In this document: positions 11,996-12,300 of the stretch, one piece after another
How the letters are laid out: each line of letters begins with the position of its first letter
How positions within the stretch are numbered: position 1 is the first letter of the stretch
DNA from: Lama glama
Lineage: Eukaryota
Length of the DNA stretch: 64,000 nt
Direction: 5' to 3'
NCBI GenBank assembly: GCA_028534125.1
Contig: CM052825.1
Span: forward strand, 310,001 to 374,000
Notes under the pieces: generated by a model
Told to the model about the DNA's origin: nothing
Databases searched by the model: none
What the model saw: the letters and a program-made list of their open reading frames with translations, nothing else
Translations under genes and position numbers: made by a program

Positions 11996-12154
11996 CATGA
12001 GGATGCGCCGGTAGCTGTCCCGGTCGATGCCCCAGACCTTGAGGTCGGTCTTGGCCTTCACAGTCGCTGCCCTGGGGGTGCCGTAGATCAGGGCAAGCTC
12101 CCCGAAGCTGCCACCTTCACTGATGCTGGTCACCCACTCTCCATTCACATACAC
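11996..12154 (-). CDS. PRKAR1B: PRKAR1B exon 7 (159 nt), phosphate-binding cassette A
   Basis: Acceptor ctctgtccccaaag|GTG, donor ATG|gtgagt. Translates [53 protein letters not shown] with intact [14 protein letters not shown]. Confidence 0.98.
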
Positions 12155-12300
12155 CTTTGGGGACAGAGGACAGCGTCACAGGAGCCTGGGGTCACCCACT
12201 CTCCGTTCACATACACCTTCGGGGACAGAGGACAGCGTCACAGGGGCCTGGGGTCACCTGCCCTCCATCCACATACACCTTTGGGGACAGAGGAACAGCA
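12128..12300. repeat. 62-bp tandem repeat (~2.8 copies) spanning the exon 7 acceptor
   Basis: Units start at 12128, 12190 and 12252 (ggtcacc...acatacacctt(t/c)ggggacagagga...). Confidence 0.97.

Follow-up and report, generated by a model that had tools for sequence, protein, structure and literature searches.

A 62-bp tandem repeat across the intron 6/exon 7 junction triplicates the exon 7 splice acceptor of PRKAR1B in a camelid

Results

PRKAR1B exons in the window

The DNA analyzed here is a stretch of 64,000 nt (the window), the minus strand of which carries a series of exons that, judged by their protein matches, belong to PRKAR1B, the gene for the type I-beta regulatory subunit of PKA (RI-beta). 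Translated exon 7 is identical to human RI-beta (PDB 4DIN_B) at 50 of the 52 positions of residues 184-235, and its score with 4DIN_B is 122.9 bits vs 114.9 bits for the best RI-alpha. Furthermore, tblastn with alpaca isoform X2 as the query aligned to seven exons, in order, with identities of 85-100% in the individual alignments, as well as to an alternative last exon; exon 8 was matched by a weak 47% alignment alone. A word search with exon 3 gave the RI-beta proteins of Camelus ferus and Vicugna pacos as the best matches. An initial reading of the letters alone (the sequence-only reading) had placed the cAMP phosphate-binding cassette A in exon 7, and the match with RI-beta, in which the cassette of cAMP site A is present, agrees with this. 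The exons were located as follows.

About 51299-51120, 50124-50035, 20412-20350, 5930-5860, and 2384-2262, minus strand: further PRKAR1B exons, in order
19839..19885, minus strand: PRKAR1B exon 6, encoding DEGDNFYVIDQGEVD and followed by gtaagt, the donor that pairs with one of three acceptors
11998..12154, minus strand: PRKAR1B exon 7, 157 nt, encoding RI-beta residues 184-235 with phosphate-binding cassette A (protein match)

Within exon 3, the codon at 51215-51213 (minus strand) encodes S in the window and N in the alpaca and Camelus RefSeq proteins; this change in the variable linker may distinguish species or only individuals. The alternative last coding exon (about 431-502, minus strand) encodes DFERTWSLEVCVLALDPPASLRR and is joined after exon 9, giving isoform X2 of alpaca (320 aa) and X3/X4 of Camelus, from which most of the second cAMP-binding domain is missing. 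The window codes for the alpaca version of this tail, the Camelus version being one residue different; together with the exon 3 matches, this shows the DNA to be that of a camelid nearer to llama and alpaca. Similar isoforms of 305-339 aa are listed for whales, bats, and primates. Camelus isoforms P0124-P0126 carry three further alternative C termini after exon 9 (KRLSFLDKD..., ARGFPRRDR...). The 3′ end of PRKAR1B seems rich in alternative terminal exons in camelids. An old Camelus ferus model, P0001 (175 aa; window positions 49808-50124 and 54112-54278, minus strand), begins in non-coding sequence further upstream and passes the exon 4 donor into the intron; it is a mis-annotated fragment rather than an isoform. 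At the exon 7 donor (11990-11997, minus strand), a second consensus-like donor lies 4 nt downstream, making the two overlapping tandem donors. Finally, positions 44411-44849 hold N runs of 146 and 292 bases with one base between them, which represent an assembly gap or a masked stretch.

A 62-bp tandem repeat spans the intron 6/exon 7 junction

According to the sequence-only reading, a 62-bp minisatellite has triplicated the acceptor of exon 7. Tandem Repeats Finder and the alignment of the units to each other bore this out.

12128..12299, minus strand: tandem array of 2.8 units of 62 bp, spanning the intron 6/exon 7 junction of PRKAR1B (Tandem Repeats Finder and unit alignment)

The program reported a period of 62, 2.8 copies, 90% matches, 0 indels, and a score of 286, and the array is unique, without a second occurrence within the 64,000-nt window. 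Read in transcript order, a unit opens with a 15-nt spacer, ccaggc[c/t]cctgtgac, which leads into a pyrimidine tract (about 16 nt); (a/g)aAG comes next, and the initial 27 nt of the exon close the unit. Thus, each unit combines about 35 nt of intron end, with a branch-like TGAC, a pyrimidine tract, and an AG, with a 27-nt start of exon 7. One monomer spans the genuine exon-intron boundary, as the last unit holds the AG at 12156-12155 together with the first 27 nt of exon 7.

The units are related to different degrees. Copies 2 and 3 are identical at 59 of 62 positions; between copies 1 and 3, the 47 well-aligned bases show four substitutions and one indel, and nothing in copy 1 clearly matches the spacer. 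Unit-to-unit divergence amounts to 5-15% (three to nine substitutions plus an indel). Copy 1 is the more diverged unit, in line with the earlier view that its exon-like part has degenerated. As to the origin of the spacer, it was aligned locally with the sequence into which the exon continues and with the intron preceding copy 1, and the scores were just 4 and 5.

Three acceptors, one of them in frame

The array provides three acceptors on the minus strand in which AG is followed directly by GTG, with exon starts at 12278, 12216, and 12154. Their AG dinucleotides, and the stop codons met after splicing to the first two, lie at the following positions.

12279..12280, minus strand: AG of pseudo-acceptor 1 (exon-like start at 12278; met first in transcript order; adds 124 nt if used)
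12217..12218, minus strand: AG of pseudo-acceptor 2 (exon-like start at 12216; adds 62 nt if used; G at -4)
12155..12156, minus strand: AG of the productive acceptor (exon 7 start at 12154; camelid RefSeq proteins read QGEVD up to the junction)
12207..12209, minus strand: TGA met after splicing to 12278 (translation)
12145..12147, minus strand: TGA met after splicing to 12216 (translation)

The three sites are nearly indistinguishable in their immediate context. Over 23 nt (20 of intron and 3 of exon), the true site and site 2 differ at a single position, A or G at -4, and the sole difference between site 1 and the true site is one extra T in the pyrimidine tract. All three carry a sub-optimal A at -3, and the context of the true acceptor is no better than that of the decoys.

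The reading frame sets them apart. The last codon of exon 6 is complete, and gtaagt comes directly after it; exon 7 is thus in phase 0 and 12154 is the only in-frame start. Translation from 12278 gives VYVDGGQVTPGPCDAVLCPRRCM*, i.e., 23 codons and then TGA 12209-12207; translation from 12216 likewise runs for 23 codons to TGA 12147-12145; translation from 12154 gives the open exon. The phase of exon 6 and the translations thus agree with the sequence-only reading on the three acceptors and the single in-frame one, and on the 62 and 124 nt that the decoys would add before a premature stop.

A transcript becomes an NMD substrate when its stop precedes the last exon junction by more than about 50 nt. 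Neither decoy stop lies beyond exon 7, and two or more exons follow within the window, which is the structure required for AS-NMD. Under the established NMD rules, decoy-spliced products should be cleared.

The array is genuine, and its first duplication predates the split of two camelid lineages

Short tandem repeats are sometimes inflated in assemblies, and a mis-assembled single junction could in principle appear as a triplication; the sequence-only reading had named such an artefact as fatal to its case. We sampled 64 31-mers from 11900-12500 and scored their presence in sequencing runs. All 64, including those across the unit joints, were found in ten DNA runs; these come from five studies and carry the labels of two organisms. 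A third labelled organism holds 0.95 of the sampled words, and the other DNA runs hold 0.91-0.95. Because the units differ from each other (by three to nine substitutions plus an indel, as above), these words are specific to unit and joint, which excludes mis-assembly, whereas the number of units cannot be counted by word sharing, any extra unit being invisible to a 31-mer test. Independent contigs of a related camelid, described below, also code for copy 1 followed by another unit. Taken together, the array is real, and an assembly artefact can for practical purposes be set aside.

The relative was found with a long stop-free stretch ending in the decoy-1 peptide (12210-12848) as the query. 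The one cluster matched consisted of Logan ORFs P0121 and P0122, drawn from five contigs; they belong to a related camelid and share 92% amino-acid identity with the window over 163 codons of unspliced genomic sequence. Both ORFs end in ...NAVPLSPEVYVDAGQVTPGPCDTVLYPQRCM*, with the same 23-codon (62-nt) spacing and the same degenerate D and Q of copy 1 as in the window. The related camelid therefore has copy 1 and at least one further unit. Since both lineages share copy 1 and a further unit, the first duplication predates their split. Copy 1 has diverged by about 10%, against about 5% between copies 2 and 3, which is consistent with duplication in two rounds. Many individuals carry the array, as does a second camelid lineage, and it was indeed found in every camelid sample that could be examined.

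One difference between the lineages touches splicing directly. Where the AG of decoy 1 lies, the window has a K codon (aag) and the related camelid an E codon. An E codon implies either G at -3 or loss of the AG; hence, the decoy 1 acceptor would be weakened or lost in the relative and would thus lack conservation as an acceptor. From this comparison, decoy 1 appears to lack the conservation expected of a regulatory site.

Acceptor use in gene models and RNA

Every camelid RefSeq model retrieved joins exon 6 to exon 7 canonically. Exon 6 is joined to 12154 in Vicugna pacos XP_072799610.1 and likewise in each of four Camelus isoform sequences that share its cluster (P0123-P0126); after QGEVD, the junction continues with 12 residues that correspond to this acceptor. 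RefSeq models rest partly on protein homology, and NMD isoforms would go unreported in them. No ORF joining exon 6 to a decoy peptide was found by word searches that covered ORFs of 117-373 aa and of 44-140 aa in a collection without this species' own genomic ORF; these searches returned only the unspliced genomic ORF of the relative.

The stretch is also held by five RNA runs from three studies, all of them reproductive-system or metatranscriptomic samples and none from brain. Their shares of the sampled words are 0.34, 0.34, 0.34, 0.33, and 0.27, i.e., 22, 22, 22, 21, and 17 of 64. Exon 7 alone covers 127 of the 571 word positions and would supply 14 words (exactly 14 if every ninth word was sampled), and the hypergeometric probability of at least 22 words from exon 7 alone is 0.013. 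Exon 7 with 62 nt added would supply 21 words, and with 124 nt added, 28. This suggests that the RNA contigs extend about 60-70 nt past exon 7. The excess could reflect appreciable use of 12216, for which it is a lead only, and pre-mRNA reads reaching a short way into an intron would account for it as well.

Neurons are the main site of RI-beta protein. One can picture a tissue switch: non-neuronal cells, such as those of reproductive tissue, would splice mainly to 12216, which would help to keep RI-beta off where it is not wanted, while neurons select 12154. The neuronal bias of RI-beta and the origin of the RNA runs speak for it, as none of the five comes from outside the reproductive-system and metatranscriptomic categories and four of them hold the 21-22 words expected of exon 7 plus 62 nt. 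However, the same word count would arise from a pre-mRNA extension of about 65 nt into either flanking intron, or from chance in word sampling (P about 0.01-0.03), and the word searches revealed no spliced decoy ORF. Consequently, we regard such a switch as unlikely.

Candidate branch sites

Mapping of branch motifs and AG dinucleotides gave three AG-free zones, distinct from one another, and in each of them a single T-n-A branch candidate.

12301, minus strand: candidate branch A (TAAT) for pseudo-acceptor 1, at -23 from 12278, in AG-free zone 12330-12280 (motif and AG map)
12238, minus strand: candidate branch A (cTGTGAC) for pseudo-acceptor 2, at -22 from 12216, in AG-free zone 12249-12218 (motif and AG map)
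12176, minus strand: candidate branch A (cTGTGAC) for the productive acceptor, at -22 from 12154, in AG-free zone 12187-12156, inside the repeat unit (motif and AG map)

The branch sites are putative, being predicted from the motifs and the AG map. The AG-free zone of the productive site measures 31 nt only. By the AG-exclusion-zone rule (PMC7317903), 12154 could thus not be served by the original branch site ahead of the array, and the branch used by this acceptor would have to lie inside the repeat. RNA folding of 12037-12480 gave a probability of being unpaired of 0.21 for the tract of site 2, vs 0.40 and 0.49 for sites 1 and 3; this difference is too weak to build on.

Discussion

Minisatellites that begin with a monomer lying across an exon-intron boundary, and that repeat the donor, have been described in F7, CBS, IFI6 (also named 6-16), LMNB2, and PDGF (PMC1557585). 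The pseudo-sites in these arrays are usually silent or little used: F7 IVS7 (37 bp, 5-9 units), LMNB2, and PDGF use the authentic site only, and CBS, with a 31-bp unit in its intron 13 VNTR, and IFI6 also use two pseudo-sites (PMC1557585). The PRKAR1B array resembles them in that the repeat includes the splice junction, the authentic site stands beside pseudo-sites that are identical to it or nearly so, the productive site is the one that runs on into the exon, and use of a pseudo-site shifts the frame. In contrast to these arrays, which repeat the 5′ splice site and place the pseudo-sites downstream, the PRKAR1B array repeats the 3′ splice site together with a branch-like motif and a pyrimidine tract. 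Its pseudo-sites lie upstream and so are met first, and its authentic site, unlike those of the donor-side cases, would have taken its branch site from within the repeat. Moreover, the human donor arrays are polymorphic VNTRs of 5-26 units, whereas the PRKAR1B array comprises 2.8 diverged units. It is therefore an acceptor-side variant of this kind of minisatellite rather than a plain member. We found no example of an acceptor-side minisatellite in the literature searched.

Three other known systems invite comparison. In Drosophila, tandem duplications containing splice sites become intron, as described by the proto-splice-site duplication model, and NMD clears the mis-spliced forms (PMC2891723). 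Similarly, duplication of the PRKAR1B junction leaves usable sites, of which the outer pair restores the mRNA while the extra copy passes into the intron. The Drosophila cases, however, create or move introns in coding sequence; in PRKAR1B an existing intron gains 124 nt and its position in the mRNA is unchanged. As in AS-NMD with poison exons or alternative sites, an alternative choice in PRKAR1B leads to a premature stop that lies well ahead of the last exon junction. But known regulatory cases of AS-NMD are conserved and under feedback or factor control, whereas the PRKAR1B elements appear lineage-specific and one decoy is altered in the relative. The array thus resembles an AS-NMD switch in structure alone, and a literature search for AS-NMD of PRKAR1B found nothing specific. 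NAGNAG tandem acceptors also compete, as neighbors, for one exon. Their acceptors are 3 nt apart, draw on a common branch site and tract, and keep the frame; those of PRKAR1B are 62 nt apart, have a module each, and break the frame, and we rejected identity with NAGNAG sites on these grounds.

How would the spliceosome arrive at the last of three such sites? Scanning in the 5′-to-3′ direction is the accepted mode of 3′ splice site choice, and early experiments with globin duplications found the proximal copy to be used (PMC1557585). Here, the scanning view would favor the first site, 12278, which counts against exon definition and silent decoys. We envisage the following route. The intron 6/exon 7 junction would have been duplicated in tandem long ago, in two rounds, to give three complete branch/tract/AG modules of near-equal strength. 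The last unit, alone in running on into the rest of the exon, would have stayed the productive acceptor, and the two upstream units would in effect have become the new 3′ end of intron 6. Scanning from a branch site may account for the choice within a module, though not for that between modules. The latter would be made by exon definition: only the last module has behind it a full exon with its enhancers and a donor 157 nt away, and each decoy has 27 nt of exon sequence before another tract begins. Exon definition is the most likely basis of acceptor choice at this locus. In duplication experiments of 1986, Reed and Maniatis reportedly found an influence of how much exon sequence follows a duplicated acceptor. 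A large leak into the decoys is nevertheless plausible, given the A at -3 and the lack of a better context at the true acceptor.

The sequence-only reading had gone further and proposed a copy-number-tunable rheostat, in which the decoys are used meaningfully, their products are lost to NMD, and the number of units sets the dosage of RI-beta. Several observations would suit such a control, namely three almost identical acceptor modules, early stops after both decoys, RNA runs that exceed the word supply of exon 7 and match that of exon 7 plus 62 nt, and the use of repeated splice sites in CBS and IFI6 (PMC1557585). Nonetheless, the proposal found no support in the camelid data. The gene models are all canonical, with every RefSeq junction at 12154, and the AG codon of decoy 1 is altered in the related camelid. 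Ten DNA runs carry all words of the three-unit form, and variation in copy number was not observed, though extra units would escape this test. Furthermore, a divergence of 5-15% between units points to a static, old duplication and not to an actively expanding and contracting VNTR, and two word searches revealed no ORF joining exon 6 to a decoy, which is weak evidence. The static, diverged units and the changed decoy 1 somewhat disfavor the rheostat idea, and we consider it quite improbable.

Instead, an old camelid duplication has probably been absorbed into intron 6, with the last unit as the productive acceptor and decoy splicing as a tolerated leak rather than a tuned control. That 12216 is used in camelids at a substantial, tissue-dependent rate, the repeat acting as a damper or off-switch for RI-beta outside neurons, has in our estimate a low probability.

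Repeats that multiply donors have been useful natural models of 5′ splice site choice, and the PRKAR1B array offers an acceptor-side counterpart. Three near-equal, complete modules, 62 nt apart, precede an essential and highly conserved exon for which the last one must be used, and this last acceptor has been in use since before the two sampled camelid lineages split. The locus is thus a natural experiment that sets branch-site scanning against exon definition and against the amount of exon sequence behind a site. If decoy use is negligible, the array is simply an old, tolerated duplication absorbed into an intron. If the reading that involves 12216 is true, the spliceosome has to skip two equal upstream acceptors to make the protein, and the locus would provide a direct test of 3′ splice site choice. 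It could also reveal a lineage-specific loss of RI-beta output via NMD.
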